Sequence record: MZ574432.2 | Strand: one strand, 5' to 3' | Length of the DNA: 64,000 bases | Part shown: positions 2,843 to 30,034 of the stretch, in pieces | Position numbering within the stretch: position 1 is the stretch's first letter | Layout: the number at the start of each line of letters is the position of its first letter | Position numbers and translations under genes: made by a program | The notes under the pieces: model-generated | Told to the model about the DNA's origin: nothing | Databases searched by the model: none | Seen by the model: only the letters and a program-made list of their open reading frames with translations

Positions 2843-2882
2843 AACAATGCAGTTGACAGCATAATTCTGCTATGCGACAAAG
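2843..2882 (+). promoter_or_regulatory. early-type promoter motif TTGAC-N1-2-GCAT-N9-ATGCGAC (first copy)
   Basis: GTTGACAGCATAATTCTGCTATGCGACAA, followed by GAGGAG and a start codon. Confidence 0.75.
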
Positions 2883-2908
2883 GCTCATCGAAACGAGGAG
2901 CCGCCCAC

Positions 2909-3049
2909 ATGTGGGAAGTCAAGACCTTCAAGACCCGCCTCGCCAAGGAGGCCTGGATCGCCCGCAATGAGGCGCGTTACCAGATCGTCGAGATCGTGGT
3001 CGCCAACGCCTACGGCGTCGAATTCAAGCCCCTGCGACGCATCGGCTAG
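2909..3049 (+). CDS. early hypothetical protein (46 aa)
   Basis: MWEVKTFKTRLAKEAW...; GAGGAG SD. Confidence 0.75.
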   Translation: MWEVKTFKTRLAKEAWIARNEARYQIVEIVVANAYGVEFKPLRRIG

Positions 3050-3067
3050 ACACGAAAGGAAAGCCCC

Positions 3068-3259
3068 ATGATTCCGCCCGAGGTCCTCAACCCGCGCGAC
3101 TACTGGACCCCCATCGCCACGCGTCAGAAAGCCGAGGCCCTCGCCGAACGCTACGCGGTGGACGACTACGAGGCGCCCGGAACCTACACCGTCGAAGAAA
3201 AGGGCGCGGCCTTCGCCATCGCCTATTACGAAGACGGCGAATTCATCGCCTACGTCTAG
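3068..3259 (+). CDS. early hypothetical protein (63 aa)
   Basis: AAGGA SD; followed by a terminator. Confidence 0.75.
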   Translation: MIPPEVLNPRDYWTPIATRQKAEALAERYAVDDYEAPGTYTVEEKGAAFAIAYYEDGEFIAYV

Positions 3260-3265
3260 GCCAGA

Positions 3266-3446
3266 CCCGGCGCCCCCTCCCCAGGGCGCCGGGTTTTTCC
3301 TGGCGCCCAGCCGTTAAGGTTAACCCGGCGTTAAGGTTAACGCCCCATTAGGGTTAACGCCGCGTTAGGGTTAATCGGCCATTAACCCTCCAGGCGAAAA
3401 TAGTGCAAGAAAGCGGTTGACTGCATATCAGGCCTATGCGACAAGA
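3266..3446 (+). promoter_or_regulatory. cassette control element: terminator + four tandem CtrA-like boxes + early promoter
   Basis: CCCGGCGCCC..GGGCGCCGGG-T5 hairpin; TTAA-N7-TTA(A/G) four times at 17-bp period (3312-3386); GCAAGAAAGCGGTTGACTGCAT..TATGCGAC. Confidence 0.8.
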
Positions 3447-3472
3447 GGGCGTCCCCAACGAGGAGGCCTCTC

Positions 3473-4108
3473 ATGGCTCTGCCGGAACACCTTTTCATCG
3501 CCGATCACGGCGACCTCTACGATACCCGCGTCGAAGGCTGGAGCGCCAAGGCGCCCCTGCGCCGCGCCTATCGCGTCGCCCTGCCCAAAATCGAGAGCAT
3601 GGGCCACGTCAAGGCCGCGCTGCGCTATGGCGACACGACTGACCTGGGCGGCTATCCGCTCTACTTCGTCACGCGCGATGGCGCGGCGCTGTCGTTCGAG
3701 AGCGCCCGCAAGATGCTCTATCAGATCGCGCTCGACTTCCAAGCCGACGCCTCGACCGGCTGGCGCATCGCCGCCGTCCAGATCAACTATGAGGACGGCG
3801 ACTTGCGTTGCGATCATAGTGGCGAGCGCATCCCCTGCGCCTACAATGACCCCGAAGTCATGGCCTGGGCGAGCGGCTCCAACGTGTCGGGCTTCATGCC
3901 GGACAACGAGCCTTCCCATCATGCGACCTGGGAAGAGGCCCGCGACGCGCTCAAGCAAGACATCGAATTCGCGCGCGAGGCCTGCGAGGAGGGGAGCGAG
4001 GAGGACGGCCAATTCGCCCACGTCCTCGACGTCCTGGCCACGCTCCAAGAGGGCGCGGAATTCAACTACGGCGCCAACGGTTACCGTTGGTGGGTCGAAA
4101 AGCTCTAG
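3473..4108 (+). CDS. early hypothetical protein (211 aa)
   Basis: GAGGAGG SD; GGYPLYF and CDHSGERIPCAY motifs typical of conserved phage hypothetical proteins. Confidence 0.8.
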   Translation: MALPEHLFIADHGDLYDTRVEGWSAKAPLRRAYRVALPKIESMGHVKAALRYGDTTDLGGYPLYFVTRDGAALSFESARKMLYQIALDFQADASTGWRIAAVQINYEDGDLRCDHSGERIPCAYNDPEVMAWASGSNVSGFMPDNEPSHHATWEEARDALKQDIEFAREACEEGSEEDGQFAHVLDVLATLQEGAEFNYGANGYRWWVEKL

Positions 4109-4122
4109 CGAAAGGAACGCCC

Positions 4123-4269
4123 ATGTTCATCCTGATTGTCGGCAATCCCGTCGATGGCTACGCCTATTATGGTCCCTTCCATGACCATGACGATGCGACC
4201 AACTATGCCGAGAACACCGGCACGGAAGGAAACCCTTGGTGGGTCGCGCCGCTTGAAGAGGCCGAGTAA
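4123..4269 (+). CDS. early hypothetical protein (48 aa)
   Basis: MFILIVGNPVDGYAYYGPF; AAGGA SD. Confidence 0.75.
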   Translation: MFILIVGNPVDGYAYYGPFHDHDDATNYAENTGTEGNPWWVAPLEEAE

Positions 4270-4306
4270 CCCCGCGATCTAAACCCCCTTTAAGAGGAGA
4301 CCGCCC

Positions 4307-4609
4307 ATGGGCGCCGACTGTTTTGTGACCACCGCCAAGGGCAAGAACGCCAAGGAAGCGTTTCGCGACGCCGTGGACGAAGCCCAGTATAAATATGGCC
4401 ATGGTGGCTATACCGGAACCATCGCCGAAAAGCACGAATTCGCCATGGACAAGGGTTTCAAGCCCGACCCCGCGAGCGAAAAGACGGTGATCGAGCAAGC
4501 CCAAGACTACGCCTGGACCAAGGTCGAGGACGAAGACAAATATGGGCCTGCCGTGTGCCTGGACCTGGGCGAAGGTCAATTCCTGTTCTACGGCGTCGCC
4601 AAATGCTAG
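4307..4609 (+). CDS. early hypothetical protein (100 aa)
   Basis: GAGGAG SD; YGHGGYTGTIAEK motif. Confidence 0.8.
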   Translation: MGADCFVTTAKGKNAKEAFRDAVDEAQYKYGHGGYTGTIAEKHEFAMDKGFKPDPASEKTVIEQAQDYAWTKVEDEDKYGPAVCLDLGEGQFLFYGVAKC

Positions 4610-4614
4610 GCGAG

Positions 4615-4763
4615 TCCAGGCCTTCGCGGCCTGGGCTTTGCCCTCCCGCCGGCGTTAACCTTAACGCGGCATTAGGGTTAACGCCGGCCGCCCAGGCTGT
4701 TAACCACCTTGCGAAAATAGTGCAAGAAAGCTGTTGACTGCATCAAAGCCCCATGCGACAAGA
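4615..4763 (+). promoter_or_regulatory. cassette control element (terminator, CtrA-like palindrome, promoter)
   Basis: GTTAACCTTAAC-GCGGC-ATTAGGGTTAAC; GCAAGAAAGCTGTTGACTGCAT..CATGCGAC. Confidence 0.8.
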
Positions 4764-4787
4764 GGTCATCGAAACGGGAGACACCCC

Positions 4788-5339
4788 ATGACCGACAAGA
4801 CCACCGACCTGCTCTATCCGCAAACCCTGCTGGCCCAGAACCTGCCGGGTCGCCCCGGCATGCTGCCGGCCTGGATCGTGCTGCGCGACATGGGGCCGAA
4901 ATCCCATCACCGCTACGTCACCCATATGCGGCTCGAATATCCGGCCATTGACGAGGCCGGCCCGAAATACGGCTTTGACCATGGCCATTATTTCGCCGAC
5001 CTGCGCGAGGCGATCGAAGACTATAGCCAGCGCTGCGCCGATAAGGTCATGAGCGCCATGCGCCAAGCCTACGACGTACCGCGCGCGCCGGACAAGCCGC
5101 GCACCGTGACCCTGCCGCTGGGCGTGGTCCAGGCCGCCTATGGCCTGATCGACGGCAACACCTTCGACCTCAACGCCGCCACCGAGGACAAGGACTTGGT
5201 GAACGCCACCGAGGAGGCGCTTCGCGAGGCCCTGGGCTCCGATCGCTTTTTCCGCGATGTCGAAGCCGCCTCCAAGGCGCTCGCCGACGCCTACCGCGCC
5301 GCCAATCAACCGCCGGCCGAGGAGACCGCCCATGGCTGA
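4788..5339 (+). CDS. early hypothetical protein (183 aa)
   Basis: Start reassigned to MTDKTT after the conserved leader AACGGGAGACACCCC. Confidence 0.8.
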   Translation: MTDKTTDLLYPQTLLAQNLPGRPGMLPAWIVLRDMGPKSHHRYVTHMRLEYPAIDEAGPKYGFDHGHYFADLREAIEDYSQRCADKVMSAMRQAYDVPRAPDKPRTVTLPLGVVQAAYGLIDGNTFDLNAATEDKDLVNATEEALREALGSDRFFRDVEAASKALADAYRAANQPPAEETAHG

Positions 5340-5847
5340 TTATGAGGCCTATGTGGTCTTGGACAAGCGCCGTCGCCATGTGGCGACGGTGACGTTCAAA
5401 TTCACCGAAAGCCAAGTGACGGCCACCGTCGTCACGCCGTGGTCGGCGCCGGAGTCCCTGGCGCGCATCGCCAAGGTCAAGGGCTGGGTGATCGATCAAA
5501 ACCGGCTCATCGATCCTGCGACCGGCAAGGCCGTGGCCTATGTCTCCAAGGTCCAGGAGCAGACCGGCAAGGCCGGCGGCTACGGCTACGACAAGCGCGC
5601 CGCCTCGCTCGCCGGCCTCTATGTCGATGGCCACGAGATGGGCGACCATTCGTCCAGCCTCGGCGCCCCGAAAAAGCCCAAAGGCGCCGACCTCTACCCG
5701 GCCGACTTCACCCCGCCCAAGGGCTACCGGCTGGCCAACTACCAGAGCGCCACCGAGACCAAGGAAGCCGGCTATATGTCGTGTTTCCGCGAGCAAGGGC
5801 TGAACTACCTGACCGCCCTGGGCTACGACGTTATCCAGGCGCTCTAA
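5332..5847 (+). CDS. early hypothetical protein (171 aa)
   Basis: Start MADYEAY with GAGGAG SD; GKAGGYGYDK motif. Confidence 0.8.
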   Translation: MADYEAYVVLDKRRRHVATVTFKFTESQVTATVVTPWSAPESLARIAKVKGWVIDQNRLIDPATGKAVAYVSKVQEQTGKAGGYGYDKRAASLAGLYVDGHEMGDHSSSLGAPKKPKGADLYPADFTPPKGYRLANYQSATETKEAGYMSCFREQGLNYLTALGYDVIQAL

Positions 5848-5852
5848 GGCGA

Positions 5853-6016
5853 AGGCCCGCCACACCGGCGGGCTTTCTGCTGGCCCTAGGCGTTAACCTT
5901 AACCGGGCGTTAGGGTTAACGGGGCGTAAACAAACATGGTTAACGCGGCCCATGGTCAGCCCAGGCGAAAAGGTGCAAGAAAGCTGTTGACAGCATTTCG
6001 ACCCCATGCGACAAGG
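5853..6016 (+). promoter_or_regulatory. cassette control element (terminator, CtrA-like palindrome, promoter)
   Basis: GCCCGCC..GGCGGGC-TTT; GTTAACCTTAACCGGGCGTTAGGGTTAAC; ATGGTTAA half-site; promoter motif. Confidence 0.8.
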
Positions 6017-6062
6017 GGGCTCCAAACAACGCCAACGCCCCAAGCGGGCAGGGAGACACCCC

Positions 6063-6644
6063 ATGGCCCTGGTCACCGAATCCTTCGCCGTCGACATCGA
6101 CTGCACCCGCGCCCTGACCCCTGCCGAGCGGCGCGGTCTGGCCGCCGCCATCGCCCATCTGCTGGCCATCAACATCGATAAGGTCGAGCCCGAGCCGGGC
6201 GGCTACCTGACCGCCAATATCGGCCGCGTTCGCCCGGCCGGCATGACCGGCGAGGCCGGCCGCGAGGCGCGGATCAGGACCGAGGCCCTGACCAGCCTCG
6301 ACCATGACGCCCCGGTCGCCCTGACCCTGGAGTGTGGCGGCAGCGTCGATGTCATCGCCCGCTTCTACACCATGGCCGACGCCGAAACCTACCTCAACGA
6401 AAACCCGGAAATCGACCCGGTGTCGCTGAACCTGGGCTGCTACGGCATCGACGCCCCCTATGGCGTGGCCAGCGACGCCGACGCTGATAAGCTGCTCTAC
6501 GACCTGGGCTATCGCCTGCACGCCACGGCCGGCGGCTCCTGGACCTTCACCGACCCGAAGGGCTATCTCTGGGACGGCGGCGCCAAGCGTGAGGCCGTGG
6601 TCATGATCGCCCTGGCGCAAGCCGCCCAAATCGAGGAGGCGTAA
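6063..6644 (+). CDS. early hypothetical protein (193 aa)
   Basis: Start MALVTESF after GGGAGACACCCC. Confidence 0.8.
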   Translation: MALVTESFAVDIDCTRALTPAERRGLAAAIAHLLAINIDKVEPEPGGYLTANIGRVRPAGMTGEAGREARIRTEALTSLDHDAPVALTLECGGSVDVIARFYTMADAETYLNENPEIDPVSLNLGCYGIDAPYGVASDADADKLLYDLGYRLHATAGGSWTFTDPKGYLWDGGAKREAVVMIALAQAAQIEEA

Positions 6645-6649
6645 ACGCC

Positions 6650-7075
6650 ATGACCCGCTATTCGATCATGGTCGAGGTCCAGACCCTCGCCGACAGCGAA
6701 ACCCAGGCCCGCAAGGACGTTGAATTCGCCATCATTGAGGGCCGGTTCCCCGAGCACATGAATTGGATGGTTCGCCAGAGCGCCCCTTGCGCCGGCGAGA
6801 CCGTCCAGGCCGATGACACCCCCACCCGCTGGGCGACCTTTGTCGGTCAAGCCTGGGTCCAGGGCCACAGCATGGAGGTGGACGACGCGCGCGTGCGCTA
6901 CGGGATCACCGACGCCGAATTCAACGCCAATGGCGGCGATGAGCCCGCCGACTTCGACGCCCTGGCCCAAGCCGCCCGCGCCCCGCAATGGGTCAAGGAC
7001 TGGTCAGGCCCGTTCGACGTCTATATTTCCGACATCGAGGACGGGGAAGACCCCGAGGAAGTGCGCCAGCTATGA
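6650..7075 (+). CDS. early hypothetical protein (141 aa)
   Basis: GAGGAGG SD. Confidence 0.8.
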   Translation: MTRYSIMVEVQTLADSETQARKDVEFAIIEGRFPEHMNWMVRQSAPCAGETVQADDTPTRWATFVGQAWVQGHSMEVDDARVRYGITDAEFNANGGDEPADFDALAQAARAPQWVKDWSGPFDVYISDIEDGEDPEEVRQL

Positions 7076-7623
7076 AACGCCGCCACAGCCTTTATTTGCT
7101 GGTGATCAACACCGGCCCCCTGGTGATCCTCCAGGCGCCGGCCGATTTCCTGCGCTGGGACATCCACCGCGCCGCCATCCTGCGCATGATGCGCCGTGAC
7201 CATGGCGTCAAGGCCAAGGACGTTCACGCCATCGAAGGCCTCGCCGGCTCGCCCTACGGCGCCGACGATGACCGCGAGGCCCTGGGCAAGCTCAAGGAAA
7301 CCTTCGCGGGCCTGCGCCACGGCTTCGCCGCCTTCCACCTCTACACCTGGGACGGCAAGGACTATCAGCCCTTGCGCGAGCCCCTGACGCGCCCGCAAGG
7401 CCTTGTTCGCCTCCTAGGCCCCTATCCGCCGCCGAGCGGCGTCTATGGGCCGCACGCGCGCAAGACCGCCTCCCACGTCTATCAGGTCTTCAACGCCGAT
7501 GGCGTCAAGCTGGTGGGCGGCTCGTTCGGCCCCGATCCTGACGCGGCCCTGGCCTATGCCCGCGCCCAAGCCGCCGCCAAGGGCTACCCTGACCCGGCGG
7601 TCGAGATCGTCACCCCGAATTAA
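7072..7623 (+). CDS. early hypothetical protein (183 aa)
   Basis: ATGA overlap with the upstream stop; MKRRHSLYLL. Confidence 0.75.
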   Translation: MKRRHSLYLLVINTGPLVILQAPADFLRWDIHRAAILRMMRRDHGVKAKDVHAIEGLAGSPYGADDDREALGKLKETFAGLRHGFAAFHLYTWDGKDYQPLREPLTRPQGLVRLLGPYPPPSGVYGPHARKTASHVYQVFNADGVKLVGGSFGPDPDAALAYARAQAAAKGYPDPAVEIVTPN

Positions 7624-7666
7624 ATGCAAGAAAACTGTTGACAGCCTTTCGGGGCCATGCGAGAAC
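7624..7666 (+). promoter_or_regulatory. early promoter motif without a CtrA-like box
   Basis: GCAAGAAAACTGTTGACAGCCT..CATGCGAG. Confidence 0.7.
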
Positions 7667-7738
7667 AAGGCTCAAGACGAGACAAGAGACAGCCAAGAGG
7701 AGGACATCATGAAGTAGCGACAATCTGGAGCACACCTC

Positions 7739-8197
7739 ATGAATGTATTCGTCCGCGACGATCTTTTTCAAACCGATCTCGACGAGTGTGGTGACCCGCT
7801 TCTGGGTCGCGTCTTCTACGTCGTTGTCGAGGATCAGAACGGCGCCCGCATCGCCCACGATCGTTGTTTCTACGATCACCGGCGCGTCACCGATGAGGAT
7901 GGCTTCGCCTTCTGGCAAGCCCTCTCTTACGAAGACGTCGCCGCCGAGGAAGCCAAGGCGAAAGCCCTGGCCGCCAAGATCGAGAGCCATCTGGCGCGGG
8001 GCGGCGCCCTGGACCCCGAGCACTGGCGAGACATCGACCCGTGCTATGGCTCCAAGGCCTATGCCGATCTCGACCGGTTCGGCTACTTCCTGGCCAAGGA
8101 ACGGGCCGCCGACCGCGATCGAGGCGAGAACGTCCCTGACAGCCCTTGGGACGGCATCGCCGCCATGGTCGATGGCCCCAACTGGTTCGACCGCTGA
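7739..8197 (+). CDS. early hypothetical protein (152 aa)
   Basis: GGAG SD; DPCYGS.AY motif; preceded by an in-frame ATG-AAG-TAG mini-ORF. Confidence 0.8.
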   Translation: MNVFVRDDLFQTDLDECGDPLLGRVFYVVVEDQNGARIAHDRCFYDHRRVTDEDGFAFWQALSYEDVAAEEAKAKALAAKIESHLARGGALDPEHWRDIDPCYGSKAYADLDRFGYFLAKERAADRDRGENVPDSPWDGIAAMVDGPNWFDR

Positions 8198-8203
8198 TCT
8201 TAA

Positions 8204-8343
8204 GGCCTCGCCACCCGGCGGGGCCTTTTGACCACCGCCTGGGCGTTAACCTTAACCGCCCGTTAGGGTTAACCCCGTCGCGCCCGGCGTTAACCCTGTG
8301 GCGCAAGAAAGCTGTTGACAGCATATCAGCCCCATGCGACAAG
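8204..8343 (+). promoter_or_regulatory. cassette control element
   Basis: Hairpin + T4; GTTAACCTTAACCGCCCGTTAGGGTTAAC; promoter motif. Confidence 0.8.
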
Positions 8344-8370
8344 AGCCCATCACAACGAAGGAGGTCGCCC

Positions 8371-9048
8371 ATGGGCGCCGGCATTTCAAAGACCGCACTG
8401 AACGCCCGCGTTCGGCGCCGCCTGCAAAACTTCGCCCACGCCAACGGTGGGACCTACGCCAAATATCAGGCCCAAGGCGTCAAGGACGGCCTGCCCTGGA
8501 CCAAGGGCGTCAACGTACTTCGCGCCTCCAATGGCGAGACCTTTGGCCTTGACTGCATCGTCATCGGTCAGGGCGAGGCCGCCCGCCCCTACGGCTTTTC
8601 CGACCTCGATAGCGCGATCCTGGCCTATCGCCTGGACGAGGCCGAAACCGGCGCGGCGATCTTCGCGGGCCAGCGCGGCGATTACAAGCGCTTGATCGGC
8701 CGGCGTAGCCCGTTCATCCAGACCTGGGGCTTTGACTATTGCCTCGCCCTGGAGTTGGACGACGGCGGGTTTACGCTCTTTCGCCCGAACGGGACCATGC
8801 TTCCCTTCCGGGGCGAGGCCGCCGACAGTTGGGCGCGTGAGCTTTGGGTTCTGTTGCCCAAGGTCTACCGCCGCCACGACGAGCGCAAGCCGCTCTATCG
8901 CAGCGAGGCGATCGCCCAAGCCCAGGCCCTGGACCTGTGGGCCAGCCAGTTCGCCGACGAGGATTGGACCACCGCCGGGGATGACTGGCGCGGCAAGCCC
9001 GACCACTACAAAGGCCCCCGCAACCTGCCCCACGGCGACCCGCTCTAG
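8371..9048 (+). CDS. early hypothetical protein (225 aa)
   Basis: Start MGAGISK with AAGGAGG SD. Confidence 0.8.
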   Translation: MGAGISKTALNARVRRRLQNFAHANGGTYAKYQAQGVKDGLPWTKGVNVLRASNGETFGLDCIVIGQGEAARPYGFSDLDSAILAYRLDEAETGAAIFAGQRGDYKRLIGRRSPFIQTWGFDYCLALELDDGGFTLFRPNGTMLPFRGEAADSWARELWVLLPKVYRRHDERKPLYRSEAIAQAQALDLWASQFADEDWTTAGDDWRGKPDHYKGPRNLPHGDPL

Positions 9049-9097
9049 CCAGAGGATCACCCAGGCCCCGCGCCTGGGTTCGATCCTTGCCGCGTCC

Positions 9098-9177
9098 GTT
9101 AACCCTAACACGGCGTTAAGGTTGACAAAAATAAATGCAAGAAAGCTGTTGACAGCATCGAAGCCACATGCGACAAG
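9098..9177 (+). promoter_or_regulatory. cassette control element
   Basis: GTTAACCCTAACACGGCGTTAAGGTTGAC; promoter motif. Confidence 0.8.
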
Positions 9178-9202
9178 AGGTCATCGAAACGGGAGACACC
9201 CC

Positions 9203-23021: not shown

Positions 23022-23178
23022 CGATCAAGGCCCGCGCTTGACGCGGGCCTTTTTCTGCCCCGTCCGGGTTAACCTTAACGCCGGGCGACTTTCCGTTAAC
23101 CGAAGAAAATGCAAGAAACCTGTTGACTCGCATCTTGGTCCTATGCGACAAAGGCTCATCACCAACGGGAACGCTCCC

Positions 23179-23577: not shown

Positions 23578-23793
23578 TCTTGACGCCCTCCGGCTCCGGC
23601 CGGAGGGTTAATTTTTGGCCAGCCTGCATTAACCTTAACGCGCAACCGTTCTCAGGTTAACCTTAACGTGAAAACGGTTGCAGGTTAACCTTAACCCCGC
23701 CTGCCCAGGCCTTAACCAAACCACGTGAGAAAACTGTTGACTCGCATCTAGGCCCCATGCGACAAGGTGACATCGACAACCGGAGGCCCTTCC

Positions 23794-24450: not shown

Positions 24451-24454
24451 CGAT

Positions 24455-24579
24455 CAAGGCCCGCGCTTGACGCGGGCCTTTTTCTGCCCCGTCCGGGTTA
24501 ACCTTAACGCCGGGCGACTTTCCGTTAACCGAAGAAAATGCAAGAAACCTGTTGACTCGCATCTTCGTTATATGCGAAC
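24455..24579 (+). promoter_or_regulatory. cassette control element
   Basis: GGCCCGCG..CGCGGGCC-T5; GGTTAACCTTAAC; promoter variant TTGACTCGCAT..TATGCGAAC. Confidence 0.75.
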
Positions 24580-24610
24580 TTGACGACATCGGAAATCAAG
24601 GAACGCCGAC

Positions 24611-24985
24611 ATGGCTAAGACCGAAACCGTCGACCTCGCCCTGGTCATGCTCGATGAGAGCAAGGCCGCCAAGGGCGCCCCCCGCGCCTTCACGTTCGGC
24701 GAAGTCCGCGAGGCCTTCACCGACGCGCACGCCTTGACGTTGCTCCAAGCGCGCTTGCGCCAGATCAACGAAAACGAGTGCAACGGCTATCGCGACGAAA
24801 CCGCCGAACGCCTGGACGCTCGCCGCGAGGAGCGCGCTAAGGCCGCCGTCGTCGAGATCGCCAAGCGCTACGGCCTGACCTTCCATTTCAACGGCGATCC
24901 GCGCGGGTCGGCGCTGAAGCTGAAGACGCCTCACACCGGCCGTTATAACGGCTTTGGCGGCCGTGAGGATGGTTGGGCCGTCTAG
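24611..24985 (+). CDS. conserved phage protein (124 aa)
   Basis: ENECNG and NGDPRG motifs. Confidence 0.8.
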   Translation: MAKTETVDLALVMLDESKAAKGAPRAFTFGEVREAFTDAHALTLLQARLRQINENECNGYRDETAERLDARREERAKAAVVEIAKRYGLTFHFNGDPRGSALKLKTPHTGRYNGFGGREDGWAV

Positions 24986-25053
24986 GCCCAACTTGACGCC
25001 GCTCCACCCCCTGTAACGCGTCCCCTTCCACCCCTAGGCCTTGGAGACACACA

Positions 25054-25263
25054 ATGGCCCGCACTGCCGATCACACCACCGCCGACCGTACCCGCGCCCC
25101 TCGCGACCTCGCGCCGTGGGAACTCGACGCCGAACGCCGCCGCGCGCGCAAGGCTTCCAAGTCCTGGCGCGCCGAACGCAAGGGCGTGCGCTCGATGGGC
25201 GACTATGCCCAGGGCGACGACATGCGCACCCTCGCCGATGGGGCCGATTTCTACCCGAACTAG
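25054..25263 (+). CDS. early hypothetical protein (69 aa)
   Basis: GGAG SD. Confidence 0.7.
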   Translation: MARTADHTTADRTRAPRDLAPWELDAERRRARKASKSWRAERKGVRSMGDYAQGDDMRTLADGADFYPN

Positions 25264-25365
25264 GGCGCGCCCTGGCCAGCGAAAAAAAGTGCCGTCAACG
25301 CAAGAAAGGCGTTGACGGCATAATCGCTATATGCGACAAAGGCTCATCGGCAACGGAGACACGCC

Positions 25366-25560
25366 ATGACCTTCCACCACAACCTGATGAGCAAGCTGGA
25401 CGCGGCCCAAATGGCGGGCGAAATGACCTACGCCCAACACGCCGACATGCGCGCCACGCTGCGGGCCTCCAACATGCGCGGTCAAGTCTTCACCTCGATG
25501 GATGAACTGCGCAAGGCCTGCAAGGGCGCCGGTCGCGACTTCCAAGGCCGGTTCGCCTAA
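25366..25560 (+). CDS. gene A (64 aa), copy 1
   Basis: MTFHHNLMSK; GGAG SD. Confidence 0.8.
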   Translation: MTFHHNLMSKLDAAQMAGEMTYAQHADMRATLRASNMRGQVFTSMDELRKACKGAGRDFQGRFA

Positions 25561-25580
25561 GACCCCCTCCCCTGAGAGGC

Positions 25581-25766
25581 CCGCCCTAGAGGCGGGCTTT
25601 TTCTTGGCCGTTAGCCTCTCGTTAAGGTTAATCCCCAGGCCCTCTGGGGTTAACCTTAACGCGGCGTTAAGGTTAACCCCGGCGGCCCAGGCCTTAACCA
25701 TGGCAAGGAAAAAAGATCGCTTTCCTGCGAGAAAGCTGTTGACCGCATAAAGGCAATATGCGACAA
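25581..25766 (+). promoter_or_regulatory. terminator + CtrA-like boxes + promoter (recurs in each 885-bp unit)
   Basis: GCCCGCC..GGCGGGC-T5; perfect GGGGTTAACCTTAAC-GCGGC-GTTAAGGTTAACCCC palindrome; promoter motif. Confidence 0.85.
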
Positions 25767-25790
25767 AGGGTCATCAACGGAGCTAGTCCA

Positions 25791-25961
25791 ATGTCCTTCC
25801 GCCTCGCCCTTACCGAAGACGCCCGCTTCACCGCCGCCCGTGGCGCGGTCCGCACCGTCCGCGAGCAAGCCCGCCCGGCGCCGCACAAGGACATTGACGG
25901 CAAGGCCCTGCTGGCGCCCGCCTCGGCGCTGGACCGCATCCGCGCCGTTCTCGGGAACTGA
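25791..25961 (+). CDS. gene B (56 aa), copy 1
   Basis: Start MSFRLAL after GGAG. Confidence 0.7.
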   Translation: MSFRLALTEDARFTAARGAVRTVREQARPAPHKDIDGKALLAPASALDRIRAVLGN

Positions 25962-25964
25962 GTC

Positions 25965-26156
25965 ATGAAGGTCATCGCGCACTATGCCAACGGCCTGCAA
26001 CGGGTCATCCCCTGCGAGACCTCGCAAGAGGCTGTGGCCGCGATCAAGGCGGCTCTGACCTATGATCGCGCCGCCAAGTTCACGCTTGACAAGCGCCTTG
26101 CCTCGGCGATCCCGACCCGCGCCGCCTCCGAACGGGTTTGGCTGTTGAGCGCGTGA
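25965..26156 (+). CDS. gene C (63 aa), copy 1
   Basis: ORF directly after gene B. Confidence 0.7.
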   Translation: MKVIAHYANGLQRVIPCETSQEAVAAIKAALTYDRAAKFTLDKRLASAIPTRAASERVWLLSA

Positions 26157-26250
26157 GGGCGATCGAAAAAAGATCGCCTCACCGCAAAAAACCTGTTGAC
26201 TCGCATAAGGCCCCTATGCGATAAAAGGTCATCGGCAACGGAGACACGCC

Positions 26251-26445
26251 ATGACCTTCCACCACAACCTGATGAGCAAGCTGGACGCGGCCCAAATGGC
26301 GGGCGAAATGACCTACGCCCAACACGCCGACATGCGCGCCACGCTGCGGGCCTCCAACATGCGCGGTCAAGTCTTCACCTCGATGGATGAACTGCGCAAG
26401 GCCTGCAAGGGCGCCGGTCGCGACTTCCAAGGCCGGTTCGCCTAA
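26251..26445 (+). CDS. gene A, copy 2
   Basis: Identical translation. Confidence 0.8.
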   Translation: MTFHHNLMSKLDAAQMAGEMTYAQHADMRATLRASNMRGQVFTSMDELRKACKGAGRDFQGRFA

Positions 26446-26674
26446 GACCCCTCCCCTGAGAGGCCCGCCCTAGAGGCGGGCTTTTTCTTGGCCGTTAGCC
26501 TCTCGTTAAGGTTAATCCCCAGGCCCTCTGGGGTTAACCTTAACGCGGCGTTAAGGTTAACCCCGGCGGCCCAGGCCTTAACCATGGCAAGGAAAAAAGA
26601 TCGCTTTCCTGCGAGAAAGCTGTTGACCGCATAAAGGCAATATGCGACAAAGGGTCATCAACGGAGCTAGTCCA

Positions 26675-26845
26675 ATGTCCTTCCGCCTCGCCCTTACCGA
26701 AGACGCCCGCTTCACCGCCGCCCGTGGCGCGGTCCGCACCGTCCGCGAGCAAGCCCGCCCGGCGCCGCACAAGGACATTGACGGCAAGGCCCTGCTGGCG
26801 CCCGCCTCGGCGCTGGACCGCATCCGCGCCGTTCTCGGGAACTGA
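26675..26845 (+). CDS. gene B, copy 2
   Basis: Identical translation. Confidence 0.7.
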   Translation: MSFRLALTEDARFTAARGAVRTVREQARPAPHKDIDGKALLAPASALDRIRAVLGN

Positions 26846-26848
26846 GTC

Positions 26849-27040
26849 ATGAAGGTCATCGCGCACTATGCCAACGGCCTGCAACGGGTCATCCCCTGCG
26901 AGACCTCGCAAGAGGCTGTGGCCGCGATCAAGGCGGCTCTGACCTATGATCGCGCCGCCAAGTTCACGCTTGACAAGCGCCTTGCCTCGGCGATCCCGAC
27001 CCGCGCCGCCTCCGAACGGGTTTGGCTGTTGAGCGCGTGA
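26849..27040 (+). CDS. gene C, copy 2
   Basis: Identical translation. Confidence 0.7.
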   Translation: MKVIAHYANGLQRVIPCETSQEAVAAIKAALTYDRAAKFTLDKRLASAIPTRAASERVWLLSA

Positions 27041-27134
27041 GGGCGATCGAAAAAAGATCGCCTCACCGCAAAAAACCTGTTGACTCGCATAAGGCCCCTA
27101 TGCGATAAAAGGTCATCGGCAACGGAGACACGCC

Positions 27135-27329
27135 ATGACCTTCCACCACAACCTGATGAGCAAGCTGGACGCGGCCCAAATGGCGGGCGAAATGACCTAC
27201 GCCCAACACGCCGACATGCGCGCCACGCTGCGGGCCTCCAACATGCGCGGTCAAGTCTTCACCTCGATGGATGAACTGCGCAAGGCCTGCAAGGGCGCCG
27301 GTCGCGACTTCCAAGGCCGGTTCGCCTAA
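27135..27329 (+). CDS. gene A, copy 3
   Basis: Identical translation. Confidence 0.8.
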   Translation: MTFHHNLMSKLDAAQMAGEMTYAQHADMRATLRASNMRGQVFTSMDELRKACKGAGRDFQGRFA

Positions 27330-27559
27330 GACCCCCTCCCCTGAGAGGCCCGCCCTAGAGGCGGGCTTTTTCTTGGCCGTTAGCCTCTCGTTAAGGTTAA
27401 TCCCCAGGCCCTCTGGGGTTAACCTTAACGCGGCGTTAAGGTTAACCCCGGCGGCCCAGGCCTTAACCATGGCAAGGAAAAAAGATCGCTTTCCTGCGAG
27501 AAAGCTGTTGACCGCATAAAGGCAATATGCGACAAAGGGTCATCAACGGAGCTAGTCCA

Positions 27560-27730
27560 ATGTCCTTCCGCCTCGCCCTTACCGAAGACGCCCGCTTCAC
27601 CGCCGCCCGTGGCGCGGTCCGCACCGTCCGCGAGCAAGCCCGCCCGGCGCCGCACAAGGACATTGACGGCAAGGCCCTGCTGGCGCCCGCCTCGGCGCTG
27701 GACCGCATCCGCGCCGTTCTCGGGAACTGA
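27560..27730 (+). CDS. gene B, copy 3
   Basis: Identical translation. Confidence 0.7.
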   Translation: MSFRLALTEDARFTAARGAVRTVREQARPAPHKDIDGKALLAPASALDRIRAVLGN

Positions 27731-27733
27731 GTC

Positions 27734-27925
27734 ATGAAGGTCATCGCGCACTATGCCAACGGCCTGCAACGGGTCATCCCCTGCGAGACCTCGCAAGAGG
27801 CTGTGGCCGCGATCAAGGCGGCTCTGACCTATGATCGCGCCGCCAAGTTCACGCTTGACAAGCGCCTTGCCTCGGCGATCCCGACCCGCGCCGCCTCCGA
27901 ACGGGTTTGGCTGTTGAGCGCGTGA
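27734..27925 (+). CDS. gene C, copy 3
   Basis: Identical translation. Confidence 0.7.
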   Translation: MKVIAHYANGLQRVIPCETSQEAVAAIKAALTYDRAAKFTLDKRLASAIPTRAASERVWLLSA

Positions 27926-28019
27926 GGGCGATCGAAAAAAGATCGCCTCACCGCAAAAAACCTGTTGACTCGCATAAGGCCCCTATGCGATAAAAGGTCA
28001 TCGGCAACGGAGACACGCC

Positions 28020-28214
28020 ATGACCTTCCACCACAACCTGATGAGCAAGCTGGACGCGGCCCAAATGGCGGGCGAAATGACCTACGCCCAACACGCCGAC
28101 ATGCGCGCCACGCTGCGGGCCTCCAACATGCGCGGTCAAGTCTTCACCTCGATGGATGAACTGCGCAAGGCCTGCAAGGGCGCCGGTCGCGACTTCCAAG
28201 GCCGGTTCGCCTAA
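28020..28214 (+). CDS. gene A, copy 4
   Basis: Identical translation. Confidence 0.8.
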   Translation: MTFHHNLMSKLDAAQMAGEMTYAQHADMRATLRASNMRGQVFTSMDELRKACKGAGRDFQGRFA

Positions 28215-28444
28215 GACCCCCTCCCCTGAGAGGCCCGCCCTAGAGGCGGGCTTTTTCTTGGCCGTTAGCCTCTCGTTAAGGTTAATCCCCAGGCCCTCTG
28301 GGGTTAACCTTAACGCGGCGTTAAGGTTAACCCCGGCGGCCCAGGCCTTAACCATGGCAAGGAAAAAAGATCGCTTTCCTGCGAGAAAGCTGTTGACCGC
28401 ATAAAGGCAATATGCGACAAAGGGTCATCAACGGAGCTAGTCCA

Positions 28445-28615
28445 ATGTCCTTCCGCCTCGCCCTTACCGAAGACGCCCGCTTCACCGCCGCCCGTGGCGC
28501 GGTCCGCACCGTCCGCGAGCAAGCCCGCCCGGCGCCGCACAAGGACATTGACGGCAAGGCCCTGCTGGCGCCCGCCTCGGCGCTGGACCGCATCCGCGCC
28601 GTTCTCGGGAACTGA
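28445..28615 (+). CDS. gene B, copy 4
   Basis: Identical translation. Confidence 0.7.
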   Translation: MSFRLALTEDARFTAARGAVRTVREQARPAPHKDIDGKALLAPASALDRIRAVLGN

Positions 28616-28618
28616 GTC

Positions 28619-28810
28619 ATGAAGGTCATCGCGCACTATGCCAACGGCCTGCAACGGGTCATCCCCTGCGAGACCTCGCAAGAGGCTGTGGCCGCGATCA
28701 AGGCGGCTCTGACCTATGATCGCGCCGCCAAGTTCACGCTTGACAAGCGCCTTGCCTCGGCGATCCCGACCCGCGCCGCCTCCGAACGGGTTTGGCTGTT
28801 GAGCGCGTGA
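28619..28810 (+). CDS. gene C, copy 4
   Basis: Identical translation. Confidence 0.7.
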   Translation: MKVIAHYANGLQRVIPCETSQEAVAAIKAALTYDRAAKFTLDKRLASAIPTRAASERVWLLSA

Positions 28811-28904
28811 GGGCGATCGAAAAAAGATCGCCTCACCGCAAAAAACCTGTTGACTCGCATAAGGCCCCTATGCGATAAAAGGTCATCGGCAACGGAGACA
28901 CGCC

Positions 28905-29099
28905 ATGACCTTCCACCACAACCTGATGAGCAAGCTGGACGCGGCCCAAATGGCGGGCGAAATGACCTACGCCCAACACGCCGACATGCGCGCCACGCTG
29001 CGGGCCTCCAACATGCGCGGTCAAGTCTTCACCTCGATGGATGAACTGCGCAAGGCCTGCAAGGGCGCCGGTCGCGACTTCCAAGGCCGGTTCGCCTAA
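28905..29099 (+). CDS. gene A, copy 5
   Basis: Identical translation. Confidence 0.8.
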   Translation: MTFHHNLMSKLDAAQMAGEMTYAQHADMRATLRASNMRGQVFTSMDELRKACKGAGRDFQGRFA

Positions 29100-29329
29100 G
29101 ACCCCCTCCCCTGAGAGGCCCGCCCTAGAGGCGGGCTTTTTCTTGGCCGTTAGCCTCTCGTTAAGGTTAATCCCCAGGCCCTCTGGGGTTAACCTTAACG
29201 CGGCGTTAAGGTTAACCCCGGCGGCCCAGGCCTTAACCATGGCAAGGAAAAAAGATCGCTTTCCTGCGAGAAAGCTGTTGACCGCATAAAGGCAATATGC
29301 GACAAAGGGTCATCAACGGAGCTAGTCCA

Positions 29330-29500
29330 ATGTCCTTCCGCCTCGCCCTTACCGAAGACGCCCGCTTCACCGCCGCCCGTGGCGCGGTCCGCACCGTCCG
29401 CGAGCAAGCCCGCCCGGCGCCGCACAAGGACATTGACGGCAAGGCCCTGCTGGCGCCCGCCTCGGCGCTGGACCGCATCCGCGCCGTTCTCGGGAACTGA
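29330..29500 (+). CDS. gene B, copy 5
   Basis: Identical translation. Confidence 0.7.
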   Translation: MSFRLALTEDARFTAARGAVRTVREQARPAPHKDIDGKALLAPASALDRIRAVLGN

Positions 29501-29503
29501 GTC

Positions 29504-29695
29504 ATGAAGGTCATCGCGCACTATGCCAACGGCCTGCAACGGGTCATCCCCTGCGAGACCTCGCAAGAGGCTGTGGCCGCGATCAAGGCGGCTCTGACCT
29601 ATGATCGCGCCGCCAAGTTCACGCTTGACAAGCGCCTTGCCTCGGCGATCCCGACCCGCGCCGCCTCCGAACGGGTTTGGCTGTTGAGCGCGTGA
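29504..29695 (+). CDS. gene C, copy 5
   Basis: Identical translation. Confidence 0.7.
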   Translation: MKVIAHYANGLQRVIPCETSQEAVAAIKAALTYDRAAKFTLDKRLASAIPTRAASERVWLLSA

Positions 29696-29789
29696 GGGCG
29701 ATCGAAAAAAGATCGCCTCACCGCAAAAAACCTGTTGACTCGCATAAGGCCCCTATGCGATAAAAGGTCATCGGCAACGGAGACACGCC

Positions 29790-29984
29790 ATGACCTTCCA
29801 CCACACCATGATGAGCAAGCTGGACGCGGCGATGATGTCGGGCGAACTGACCTACGCGCAACACAGCGACATGCGCGCGGCCCTCCGCGCCGCCAACATG
29901 AGCGGCCAAGTCTTCACCTCGATGAACGAGCTTCGCGCCGCTTGCAAGGGCGCGGGTCGCGACTTCCAAGGCCGGTTCGCTTAA
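29790..29984 (+). CDS. gene A' (64 aa), diverged paralogue of gene A
   Basis: MTFHHTMMSKLDAAMMSGELT.. versus MTFHHNLMSKLDAAQMAGEMT.. Confidence 0.8.
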   Translation: MTFHHTMMSKLDAAMMSGELTYAQHSDMRAALRAANMSGQVFTSMNELRAACKGAGRDFQGRFA

Positions 29985-30008
29985 GAGCCGGCAACCTTAC
30001 TGACCAGA

Positions 30009-30034
30009 GCCCGCCCTTCGAGGCGGGCTTTTTC
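30009..30034 (+). terminator. intrinsic terminator ending the early array
   Basis: AGCCCGCC-CTTCGA-GGCGGGCT-TTTT. Confidence 0.8.

Follow-up and report, generated by a model that had tools for sequence, protein, structure and literature searches.

Organization of the Promoter Array in the Terminal Repeat

The window analyzed in this study (64,000 nucleotides), bases 1-64000 of the genome of Caulobacter phage BL47 (MZ574432.2, Bertelyvirus), contains an array of co-oriented promoter/leader modules and their genes, which sits within the direct terminal repeat (DTR) of 30,174 bp that is annotated for this phage.

1..30174 (+), left DTR of BL47 (annotation in MZ574432.2)
From record base 296621, right DTR copy of BL47
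2841..30034 (+), array of 34 co-oriented promoter/leader modules and their genes, comprising 24 unique units
2841..2880 (+), module 1, upstream block degenerate, TTGAC and ATGCGACAA intact; predicted promoter of gp006-007
3405..3445 (+), module; predicted promoter of gp008-010
4722..4762 (+), module; predicted promoter of gp011-012
5975..6015 (+), module with a long ATG distance (88 nt); predicted promoter of gp013-015
7626..7666 (+), module adjoining the gp015 stop, without terminator or palindrome; predicted promoter of gp016
8303..8343 (+), module; predicted promoter of gp017; cassette missing in CcrSC and CcrBL9
9137..9177 (+), module; predicted promoter of gp018
9848..9889 (+), module; predicted promoter of gp019
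10887..10927 (+), module; predicted promoter of gp020-021
12306..12346 (+), module overlapping the 3' end of gp021; predicted promoter of gp022-024
13310..13351 (+), module; predicted promoter of gp025-031
16064..16104 (+), module; predicted promoter of gp032
16532..16573 (+), module; predicted promoter of gp033-034
17441..17482 (+), module; predicted promoter of gp035
18511..18552 (+), module; predicted promoter of the ArdA-like gene (gp037)
18579..19022 (+), gp037 read from the promoter-proximal ATG; candidate ArdA-like antirestriction protein
19250..19266 (-), reverse copy of the 17-mer without ATGCGA, back to back with the module at 19269
19269..19309 (+), module; predicted promoter of gp038
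20120..20161 (+), module; predicted promoter of gp039-041
21151..21191 (+), module adjoining the gp041 stop; predicted promoter of gp042
21682..21723 (+), module; predicted promoter of gp043; left parent of the 1429-bp duplication
22296..22337 (+), module; predicted promoter of gp044
23111..23152 (+), hybrid module at the junction of the 1429-bp duplication (5' part from the 24540 copy, 3' part from the 21682 copy)
23725..23766 (+), duplicate of the 22296 module
24540..24581 (+), module; predicted promoter of gp047-048; right parent of the 1429-bp duplication
25300..25340 (+), A-type module, first copy; predicted promoter of gp049
25727..25767 (+), B-type module, copy 1 of 5 (others at 26611, 27496, 28381, and 29266); predicted promoter of gp050-051
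26184..26225 (+), hybrid A-type module, copy 1 of 4 (others at 27068, 27953, and 28838)
29723..29764 (+), A-type module, last copy; predicted promoter of gp064

The 17-nt 5' half of the module (17-mer) gave 34 matches at no more than two mismatches (33 on the + strand and one on the - strand) compared with 0.10 expected by chance. The combination TTGAC-N13-16-ATGCGA is present 34 times on the + strand, always within 2853-29760 and including the degenerate first copy, and is absent from the + strand of the 266-kb unique part of the genome. The first-pass annotation of this DNA had counted about 34 copies and described them as heading self-contained units of promoter, leader, genes, and terminator; both the number and the units are real, although one to seven annotated genes per unit were found and not one to six. 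Ten of the 34 copies are BL47-specific products of amplification, which leaves 24 unique modules, and the sister phages carry 23 modules plus the degenerate one. The position of the reverse 17-mer copy is conserved in CcrSC and CcrBL9. Two annotated gene starts conflict with the promoters: that of gp035 (17473) falls within its promoter, the likely start being 17518, and that of gp037 (18468) lies upstream of its promoter. With regard to the host-takeover or anti-defence roles proposed for the cassettes in the first-pass annotation, one sub-threshold ArdA match was identified among the 42 unique DTR proteins, and two further Pfam matches were weaker and not credible.

Module Anatomy and Putative Recognition

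The promoter/leader module is approximately 68 nt long and begins with an A-rich block fused to a perfect host-type -35 element (TTGAC), followed by a spacer of 14-15 nt, an invariant -10 region containing ATGCGA, and a leader of approximately 20-25 nt, in which a GGAG ribosome-binding site keeps a constant distance to the ATG. TTGAC and ATGCGA are conserved in 24/24 unique copies, and the upstream block in 18-24 of 24 per position. A distance of 64-71 nt between the 17-mer start and the ATG, with a GGAG-type ribosome-binding site before the latter, is kept in 27 of 33 modules; the leader string proposed in the first-pass annotation, by contrast, has only six matches at no more than three mismatches, so that the leader is conserved in geometry and not in strict sequence. 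The six A-type copies of the 885-bp array described below have a leader variant one G shorter.

The -10 region can be read as TG-extended, and it agrees with the Caulobacter RpoD -10 at six of eight positions (host consensus TTGaCgS / GCtANAWC; PMC8144410). A scan with an E. coli-type sigma-70 model did not detect the modules. The 17-mer also heads 29 promoter-like sites outside the array, at 157-284 kb; it is a genome-wide promoter signature, and the module is not array-specific in this part.

It is conceivable, although somewhat unlikely, that the DTR promoters form a distinct class that needs a dedicated factor (CtrA-dependent recruitment, or a virion-delivered or very early phage protein) and not the sigma-73 holoenzyme alone, the ATGCGA region separating their timing from that of the 29 other 17-mer promoters. 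The same 17-mer is indeed joined to two -10 classes with a strict split by location, and the exact 17-mer was found in no Caulobacter genome. The invariant ATGCGA has a G at the position of the conserved T of the host consensus, which, together with the near-invariance of both blocks, could indicate recognition other than by the plain sigma-73 holoenzyme. However, no candidate factor was found, and the -35 matches that of the host perfectly; with this -35 and a TG two bases upstream, which fits an extended -10, the host enzyme alone may suffice. A dedicated factor would refine, and not exclude, the reading of the modules as host-polymerase early promoters that we favor below.

Terminators and CtrA-Type Boxes

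A terminator hairpin (at least 7 bp plus a T-run, 30-160 nt upstream of the module) precedes 12 of 23 unique modules compared with 2.2% of random windows, and laxer criteria with amplified copies included gave 21 of 33 modules. A 29-nt palindrome of 12-5-12 structure with a central CtrA box (TTAA-N7-TTAA) has 18 matches at no more than three mismatches compared with 0 expected. A terminator and a palindrome, previously assigned to most modules, are therefore associated with only about half of them.

4654..4682 (+), 12-5-12 palindrome (example) with a central TTAA-N7-TTAR CtrA-type box
Starts of the other 17 palindromes: 3313, 3330, 5892, 8245, 9098, 10826, 13250, 16444, 17400, 18144, 20059, 21622, 25649, 26533, 27418, 28303, and 29188

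CtrA-type boxes are restricted to the DTR: exact TTAA-N7-TTAA is found 10 times within it and 0 times in the 266 kb outside, and the density of TTAACC/GGTTAA is 3.98 per kb compared with 0.09 per kb elsewhere. In many units, a TTAACC half-site lies approximately 25-35 nt upstream of the -35. This organization agrees with the CtrA-site-rich DTRs published for phiCbK-like phages (Mascolo et al., 2022; PMC9437464), which belong to the same subfamily and in which TTAA-N7-TTAA likewise clusters in the intergenic parts of the DTR, upstream of functionally uncharacterized genes. CcrSC and CcrBL9, of the same genus as BL47, belong with phiCbK to the group with clustered CtrA sites, CtrA~P binds and activates phiCbK DTR promoters, and gain and loss of sites accompany DTR rearrangements in these phages (PMC9437464). 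The repeated promoter of the phiCbK DTR is a different one, in which the CtrA box replaces the -35 and activation has been measured, whereas BL47 promoters have their own TTGAC with boxes further upstream, known from sequence. Because the boxes lie upstream of the -35 and not at the -35 as in the tested phiCbK promoters, CtrA dependence may differ between the two phages. The stereotyped 17-mer/ATGCGA promoter and amplifications at module junctions are not described in PMC9437464.

Tandem Amplifications and Their Junctions

21682..24539 (+), tandem duplication of 2 x 1429 bp, single copy in C1, C2, J4, and RB23
23131..23136 (+), 6-nt crossover interval of the 1429-bp duplication, in the -35/-10 spacer
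25727..29722 (+), tandem array of 884/885-bp units (five B promoters and four hybrid A promoters)
26229..26266 (+), 38-nt crossover interval of the 885-bp amplification, covering leader, ribosome-binding site, ATG, and first codons
14972..15879 (+), exact tandem duplication of 2 x 454 bp (gp028-029 = gp030-031), gene-bounded

Two tandem amplifications had been proposed to have junctions inside modules, and both junctions indeed map there. The crossover of the 1429-bp duplication lies in approximately 43 nt of similarity between the parent promoters (3 mismatches). Sister phages have one B copy between two A copies in the region of the 885-bp array; its hybrid A-type copies combine the promoter of the last A copy with the coding part of the first, and every hybrid copy has the same 38-nt crossover interval. 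Both exchanges map to the core promoter or leader and not to the CtrA palindromes. The expected copy-number variation is likewise seen among near-identical natural isolates, with single copies in four sister phages.

The 454-bp duplication is absent from the first-pass annotation. Its junction shows neither a module nor microhomology or longer homology.

The BL47 tandem copies are known from one assembly, all three duplications are found in BL47 only when seven near-identical records are compared, and the tandem units are 100% identical, as would fit artefacts of assembly or laboratory passage, with the modules being mere promoters that play no part in genome change. We consider this explanation improbable. 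The junction copies are precise hybrids of their parent modules with the polarity expected of unequal exchange, a pattern that collapse or expansion of repeats by an assembler would not create; PacBio long reads, which the same laboratory reported for related phages (PMC12195562), can span 4.4 kb; and the species also differ by module-bounded block transpositions.

Breakpoints in Related Phages

Gene adjacencies were compared among BL47, CcrSC, and CcrBL9 (three Bertelyvirus species), which revealed that module junctions are not enriched in adjacency breaks relative to module-free gene junctions in any of the six pairwise comparisons (OR 0.66-2.06, p >= 0.67). Three multi-gene block transpositions relative to CcrSC/CcrBL9 are all module-bounded, and many single-gene gains and losses fall within operons. 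Homology blocks end three times as often in module windows as at random positions, a value confounded by the modules being conserved islands.

The first-pass annotation had interpreted the array as an integron-like system without an integrase, in which the control module is a dedicated crossover site for the gain, loss, and amplification of early or anti-defence cassettes, possibly via excised circles. Two of the three amplification junctions within modules, the module-bounded transpositions, the copy-number differences between co-isolated phages, and the precedent of PeSL mini-circles (PMC2839356) would suit such a system, and, as in integrons, small genes are arrayed in units whose 3' ends carry palindromic elements. 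Integron cassettes, however, are promoterless and moved by an adjacent IntI at attI/attC, whereas each BL47 unit brings a promoter with it, attC-like sites are missing (the palindrome arms depart from GTTRRRY at base seven), the array has no neighboring recombinase gene, and the mapped junctions point to homology-driven exchange. The 17-mer being a genome-wide promoter signature, the single-gene changes inside operons, and a 454-bp duplication that needs neither module nor homology also argue against this interpretation. By the gene-adjacency measure, breaks are equally frequent at module-free junctions and independent of the modules, the outcome that the first-pass annotation itself had named as refuting its proposal. 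A role of the module as the crossover site is thus not supported, and we regard an integron-like system as very unlikely. The observation of the first-pass annotation was confirmed; of its interpretation, the array, the junctions, the copy-number variation, and the PeSL analogy stand, and the integron-like part does not.

Contrary to the proposed lack of an integrase, the genome encodes gp229, with a Phage_integrase catalytic domain (62 bits), although nothing ties this sole tyrosine recombinase to the array. The palindromes, found only in the DTR at cassette 3' ends, consist of two inverted 12-bp arms separated by a short spacer, as core sites of gp229 would, in which case the cassettes would be moved site-specifically. 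This is extremely unlikely: every mapped crossover falls in the core promoter or leader and none in the palindrome spacer, which at 5 bp is shorter than the usual 6-8 bp, and transposed blocks keep their palindromes intact, with homology continuing through them. In addition, the gp229 gene is 128 kb distant, and the central TTAA-N7-TTAA is a CtrA box, CtrA binding having been experimentally shown in the related phiCbK.

A Probable By-Product of Promoter Repetition

The BL47 array is a real but ordinary pattern, already known from other phages. The analogy with the promoter-early stem-loops (PeSLs) of T4-type phages (Arbiol et al., 2010, PMC2839356; Comeau et al., 2014, PMC4122927) fits: both are small composite motifs of terminator and strong host-type promoter, present in many copies among small ORFan genes of plastic regions, with recombination between copies leading to duplications, deletions, and replacements. 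The two are unrelated in sequence and phage lineage, and only BL47 has its copies in a 30-kb terminal repeat, with CtrA boxes and a fixed leader reaching the ATG. Mini-circles are on record for PeSLs, whereas the BL47 modules are known from sequence alone and breakpoints are no more frequent at them than at other gene junctions.

The DTR modules are probably early promoters of the host RNA polymerase with upstream CtrA sites, which as dispersed repeats allow unequal crossing-over as a by-product and not as a dedicated system. The region would represent the compartment for early genes in a jumbo phage of the phiCbK type, with the long terminal repeat split into about 24 short co-oriented transcription units with one stereotyped promoter each; in about half of these units, an intrinsic terminator and then a CtrA-box palindrome would close the unit. 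Host RNA polymerase would fire these promoters upon DNA entry, and CtrA~P would modulate them from class-I-like positions upstream. Since dozens of directly oriented copies share the same 40-70 nt, the modules can act as portable homology; recombination would therefore be a by-product of promoter repetition, as in PeSLs, and not dedicated cassette capture. An exchange between two different modules, by unequal crossing-over or by template switching, probably produced the BL47-specific 1429-bp duplication and also seeded the 885-bp array, which would then have grown by ordinary repeat recombination.

The pre-early genes of coliphage T5 offer a similar arrangement, with co-oriented small genes and strong host-type promoters in a long direct terminal repeat at the genome end; we know of no sequence relationship between T5 and the BL47 DTR and of no two-step DNA transfer in BL47. 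The genes amplified in BL47, which are without known function, also recall the "genomic accordions" of poxviruses, in which small early genes near the genome termini undergo tandem copy-number expansion.

The sequence and its relatives

Megablast assigned the window to Caulobacter phage BL47 (record MZ574432.2; 326,794 bp; Dolichocephalovirinae, Bertelyvirus), where it corresponds in register and with 100% identity to bases 1-64000. Six near-identical records were identified (C1, C2, J4, RB23, OP620777, and OP620778), together with two other species, CcrSC and CcrBL9, that share ~80% identity with BL47. Our comparisons covered the direct terminal repeats (DTRs) of C1, C2, J4, RB23, CcrSC, and CcrBL9, the remaining BL47 genome, and the phiCbK DTR. 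The record places the left DTR as follows:

1-30174, left direct terminal repeat (record annotation)

The array at 2843-30034 therefore spans nearly all of the gene-bearing DTR, the ~64 genes of which are all annotated as "hypothetical protein." An Rfam search of bases 1-31000 matched no family.

A repeated putative promoter module in the terminal repeat

The first-pass annotation of this DNA reported about 34 copies of a control module, a count that was reproduced here: the 17-mer pattern of the module (an upstream block plus TTGAC) has 34 matches at up to two mismatches compared with 0.10 expected, 33 on the + strand and one on the - strand (19250-19266). A + strand search for the module as TTGAC-N13-16-ATGCGA gave 34 copies in the DTR and none in the 266-kb unique region. 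These 34 copies, which include a first one with a degenerate upstream block (2841-2880), are all oriented with the genes. Ten copies are products of BL47-specific amplification, leaving 24 unique modules; the sister phages C1, C2, J4, and RB23 have 23 plus the degenerate one, CcrSC has ~21, and CcrBL9 has ~22.

Across the 24 unique copies, TTGAC and ATGCGA are conserved at every position (24/24), each of the 12 bases 5′ of TTGAC is conserved in 18-24 copies, and the spacer is 14 nt in 14 copies and 15 nt in the other 10. An ATG preceded by a GGAG-type ribosome-binding site is located 64-71 nt past the 17-mer start in 27 of 33 copies. The strict leader string of the first-pass annotation was limited to six copies at up to three mismatches, and each of the six A-type modules in the 885-bp array (see below) has a variant that is one G shorter. 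A custom hairpin scan with a background control was used for terminators in place of generic consensus scans. Of 23 unique modules, 12 have a hairpin of at least 7 bp with a T-run at a distance of 30-160 nt upstream, versus 2.2% of random windows; a terminator and palindrome, previously said to precede most modules, thus apply to about half of the unique set. Five of the unique modules adjoin or overlap the gene before them, and these lack both elements. The remainder of the first-pass description of the module was accurate. A generic terminator consensus scan with strict T-run rules gave no terminator excess.

The RpoD consensus of Caulobacter consists of a -35 element TTGaCgS and a -10 element GCtANAWC (PMC8144410). 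The module carries a perfect TTGAC and, 17 bases on, a stretch that matches the host -10 at six of eight positions, with an invariant G at the host-consensus T position. Two bases upstream of this -10 is an invariant TG, which we take to be the extended -10 position, and a conserved CATC is found ~7 nt after the -10, at the predicted transcription start. The modules escaped a generic E. coli-type sigma-70 consensus scan because their -10 is not TATAAT-like. Judging from these sequence features, we conclude that the modules are predicted promoters for host RNA polymerase. Three annotated gene starts fall inside or upstream of their own module and are probably mis-set, and the module geometry predicts other positions for them:

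17473, annotated start of gp035; predicted near 17518
18468, annotated start of gp037; predicted near 18579
23038, annotated start of gp045; predicted near 23179

The - strand 17-mer (19250-19266) lies back to back with the gp038 promoter, lacks ATGCGA, and is kept in place in both CcrSC (17845) and CcrBL9 (17041). Transcription from this copy would run antisense to the ArdA-like gene and toward gp036c, which is the only reverse-strand gene of the array.

Palindromes and CtrA boxes

The palindrome associated with the modules is 29 nt long, with an inverted 12-nt arm on either side of 5 nt, and its pattern has 18 matches at up to three mismatches with 0 expected. The inner halves of the palindrome form TTAA-N7-TTAA or TTAA-N7-TTAG, the type of element known as a CtrA box (PMC9437464). 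Ten exact TTAA-N7-TTAA sites are present in the DTR and none in the unique 266 kb, and TTAACC/GGTTAA half-sites are 44-fold denser inside the DTR than outside (3.98 versus 0.09 per kb). Twelve of the 24 unique modules have a half-site located 13-23 nt upstream of their 17-mer. The CtrA boxes of BL47 are ~40-100 nt upstream of the 17-mer, and the modules keep their own TTGAC.

Previous work demonstrated a high density of CtrA sites in the DTRs of phiCbK-like phages and the binding of CtrA~P to two DTR promoters of phiCbK (gp005 and gp018), whose activity is lost in a ctrA mutant; it also assigned CcrSC and CcrBL9 to the same site-clustered group (Mascolo et al., PMC9437464). The "cell-cycle-responsive" element proposed for the array is therefore already known in kind. 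Similar to phiCbK-like DTRs, BL47 concentrates TTAA-N7-TTAA in the intergenic regions of its DTR, and the CtrA-site-rich DTR of phiCbK-like phages is its closest relative by descent. The promoter design of Bertelyviruses differs from that of phiCbK, however: at least eight phiCbK DTR genes have another stereotyped promoter with the CtrA box at -35, as in the promoters tested in that phage, whereas BL47 has a host-type -35 with the boxes further upstream. The palindrome part of the module has weak matches in Brevundimonas jumbo phages.

A dense, non-coding block at 2240-2530 contains at least seven GTTA(A/G)GGTTAA(C/T) units, which are pairs of CtrA-type half-sites, and recalls the TTAA-rich gap of vB_BsubS-Delta, a Brevundimonas phage (PMC9437464). 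RB23 lacks one 17-bp unit of a GTTAAGGTTAAC-containing tandem repeat at 3312-3328, upstream of the gp008 promoter, a copy-number variation in CtrA-type sites.

A second class of promoter-like sites outside the terminal repeat

The array is not the only place where the upstream/-35 block of the module occurs. With up to two mismatches, the 17-nt block was identified 29 times in the unique region, in each case matching the local gene orientation:

Record 157772-283608 (fetched sequences L034-L037, outside the window), 23 copies on the + strand and 6 on the - strand, second-class 17-mer copies

These copies lie in an ORFan-rich region (157-284 kb), and at the same threshold the block is absent from the structural and replication modules (30-157 kb). 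They have a C-T-A-type -10, 17 nt after TTGAC, that is closer to the host consensus than the module -10. The 34 DTR sites and 29 unique-region sites add up to at least 63 promoter-like sites with a common upstream/-35 block, forming two classes that have different -10 and leader sequences and occupy strictly separate locations. A less likely alternative to recognition by the host sigma-73 holoenzyme alone is that a dedicated factor reads the DTR promoter class, the -10 and leader of which are its own and the -35 block of which is common to both classes.

The exact 17-mer was found in no Caulobacter genome among the 185,579 bacterial and archaeal genomes searched. The search returned 106 scattered single matches, about the chance level, and host-promoter mimicry by the exact 17-mer was rejected. 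In viral and metagenome collections, including IMG/VR, full modules were detected in the genomes of CcrBL9 and CcrSC only; one metagenome match was an unrelated AT-rich chance match.

Tandem amplifications in BL47

Three tandem duplications of BL47 are absent from C1, C2, J4, and RB23:

21682-24539, two copies of 1429 bp, with a hybrid middle promoter at 23111
25727-29722, array of 884/885-bp units
14972-15879, two exact copies of 454 bp, starting one base ahead of the gp028 ATG and ending with the gp029 stop

The earlier claim that two amplifications have junctions inside modules was borne out by the hybrids of the first two. The promoter at 23111 matches the 24540 copy exactly over the 1409 nt upstream and up to and including offset +25, and it matches the 21682 copy exactly from offset +20 onward. 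This overlap of parental identities places the exchange within six bases (23131-23136) of the -35/-10 spacer, inside ~43 nt of parental similarity with three mismatches. In the second duplication, the sister phages have the promoter-gene order A-B-A′, in which A and A′ are the first and last A-type copies, and BL47 has A, four B-plus-hybrid-A units, and then B for a fifth time before A′. All internal A copies take their promoter from A′ and their coding sequence from A, and the exchange interval is a 38-nt stretch common to all three (26229-26266 in the first hybrid) that comprises the leader, ribosome-binding site, ATG, and five codons. As A and A′ are paralogues, their homology reaches beyond the module; the longest perfect stretch between them is the module leader.

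At both module junctions the downstream parent contributed the 5′ part of the hybrid and the upstream parent its 3′ part, a polarity that would be expected from unequal exchange. An assembly artefact is an unlikely alternative source of the duplications, which are confined to BL47 among these phages; the hybrids, with their polarity, speak against it. Neither a module nor microhomology was found at the junction of the 454-bp duplication, which shows that duplication here does not require a module. The gp028 gene within that duplication has its CcrSC homologue in another operon and may be a small gene moving on its own.

Breakpoints and exchange among relatives

At the DNA level, the blocks gp006-007, gp011-012, and gp016 are in a different order in CcrSC and CcrBL9, and in both genomes the homology of these three moved blocks starts -10 to +12 nt from the 17-mer start. 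Among homology blocks of at least 250 bp, 11 of 36 ends (CcrSC) and 12 of 32 (CcrBL9) fall in module windows that make up 10% of the region tested (p about 1e-3 to 1e-5), an enrichment that is confounded because modules are conserved islands where alignments naturally stop. As a fairer null, gene junctions with and without a module were compared using reciprocal best hits among 42, 41, and 39 DTR genes. Between BL47 and CcrSC, 12 of 23 module junctions and 11 of 18 module-free junctions are broken, and none of the six directions gave enrichment of breaks at module over module-free junctions (odds ratios 0.66-2.06, all p ≥ 0.67). Breakpoints independent of the module had been named in the first-pass annotation as refuting its proposal, and by that measure the dedicated-crossover model is not supported across the three species. 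What is left is the use of modules by two recent duplications and by moves at the level of blocks. Of the 42 unique DTR genes, only 31-35 had reciprocal best hits in CcrSC and CcrBL9, and many of the differences are gains, losses, or replacements of one gene within an operon.

Single-nucleotide differences are distributed as mosaics with recombinant patches. From ~3 to 16.9 kb BL47 barely differs from C2, beyond which the two are ~1% diverged to the end of the DTR, and RB23 has a divergent patch at ~8.67-12.92 kb. These patterns are evidence that co-occurring phages have recently exchanged DNA; with a resolution of only 1-5 kb, the edges of the patches are not assignable to modules.

Comparison with integrons and T4-type phages

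A dedicated integron-like system, as suggested initially for the array of units, is considered unlikely, and the region does not show the features that define integrons. Integrons contain adjacent IntI, attI, and a common promoter, whereas no recombinase gene was found within the DTR of BL47; integron cassettes are promoterless and end in attC, whereas every BL47 unit has its own promoter and the arms of the 29-nt palindrome do not fit the attC core pattern. The system had also been described as "without an integrase," which the genome contradicts:

Record 157846-158622 (L034:43846-44622, in a fetched sequence), gp229, 258 aa, Phage_integrase catalytic domain at 62 bits

This tyrosine recombinase gene is 128 kb from the array and behind a second-class promoter. 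BL47 is a lytic jumbo phage; an episomal state has been reported for its subfamily (PMC12195562), and gp229 may be connected with that state.

Palindrome-directed site-specific recombination is another alternative, in which the repeated palindromes beside the modules would serve as attC-like or recombinase core sites. No mapped junction lies in a palindrome spacer and the transposed blocks carry their palindromes intact, so there is no sign of site-specific exchange; with arms unlike the attC core pattern and junctions located elsewhere, this role of the palindromes was rejected.

In terms of architecture, the closest functional analogue is the promoter-early stem-loop (PeSL) of T4-type phages. 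PeSLs combine a terminator and a promoter in one motif and lie in plastic regions, where they mediate modular shuffling through homologous recombination and where mini-circles arise when neighbouring copies exchange (PMC2839356, PMC4122927). BL47 modules similarly have an adjacent terminating stem-loop (12/23 unique modules) and cluster among small non-conserved genes in plastic regions. They may also be strong early promoters of the host sigma-70 type, with the -35 in 24/24, the -10 at 6/8 positions plus a TG extension, and a location and direction relative to the ATGs that would fit. Recombination between copies is represented in BL47 by two hybrid junctions and three module-bounded transpositions, although breaks are not enriched over module-free gene junctions. 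Since BL47 belongs to an unrelated subfamily, its module is treated as an analogue and not a member of the T4-type PeSLs, likened by architecture and not by sequence. Taken together, the initial observation of the array was confirmed and its interpretation partly supported.

Gene content of the array

Pfam searches of the 42 unique DTR proteins yielded three matches, all weak and none to a credible family, and Pfam and PHROGs combined gave these proteins no function beyond a weak ArdA lead. The 885-bp unit, which is present five-fold and thus in ten copies per genome, encodes three tiny conserved genes, and the amplified genes matched no family of known function. The ArdA lead concerns one gene:

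18579-19022, gp037, read from the promoter-proximal ATG at 18579, candidate ArdA-like gene

The gp037 protein scores 20.7 bits against Pfam ArdA, below the cut-off of 27. It has 309 homologues, of which 21 of 40 sampled match ArdA (best 1.5e-10), and one source names its gp037 homologue an antirestriction protein. The structural model (pLDDT 90.8) has ArdA 2w82 as its top PDB match, which is not significant (E 0.45, TM 0.31), and PDB sequences yielded no match with phmmer or in a profile search. We regard gp037 as a candidate antirestriction protein from a family at the edge of Pfam ArdA, and the "anti-defence" role once proposed for the cassettes is a lead for this one. Novel restriction systems limiting these phages have been reported in Caulobacter strains (PMC11945714).

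Proposed function and evolution of the array

We infer that host RNA polymerase with sigma-73 would transcribe the 24 units upon DNA entry, that terminators would insulate about half of them, and that upstream-bound CtrA~P would tune their output with the cell cycle. The directly repeated 40-70-nt modules may supply homology for occasional unequal crossing-over or template switching, and a duplication, once formed, might expand via ordinary recombination between long repeats. A bolder idea, which we consider unlikely, is that the repeated modules are more than incidental homology and that the DTR of phiCbK-like phages is a diversity-generating early compartment, in which module-to-module exchange and DTR copies homogenizing each other would lead to routine copy-number "accordions" and shuffled cassettes under selection, the five-fold 885-bp unit being a dosage adaptation against host defence.

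The array is no new kind of genetic system. Its 24 predicted early promoters and the second class of 29 represent a testable map of the least understood tenth of a jumbo-phage genome, and its junctions reveal, at base-pair resolution, repeated regulatory modules seeding gene amplification in a siphovirus terminal repeat, which carries the PeSL idea beyond T4-like phages. The promoter design, its two-class use, and the base-pair-resolved junctions appear to be undescribed in the literature covered, which excludes the genome paper of BL47 and its sisters, where a prior motif description is possible.

Other repeats and record boundaries

Annotated DTR boundaries vary between sister records. The C2 record (fetched as L002) begins with its extreme left end duplicated in near-tandem as a 578-bp unit with 98% identity (64-1207), which could be genuine or an artefact of the way in which the boundary of the repeat was drawn. 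About six tandem-like TTGACGC-N4-GCATTT repeats (four exact) are located at 2086-2230 in BL47, in a gene-free stretch upstream of the first module, and may be iteron-like or protein-binding sites. Five 23-bp repeats containing GGGACCC are present near the left end (1119-1219), with one copy of this type at 30129, 45 nt inside the right DTR boundary. In phiCbK, similar GGGGACCC repeats are found near the left end (about 850-1000 of the fetched sequence L038) and just past the right DTR boundary. Both sets of repeats may be packaging or boundary signals. Two further tandem repeats were identified in the window: an 11-bp unit repeated 2.7 times at 30418-30447, in an AT-rich, gene-free stretch just past the DTR boundary, and a 27-bp unit repeated 2.7 times at 59251-59324 (59.25 kb).
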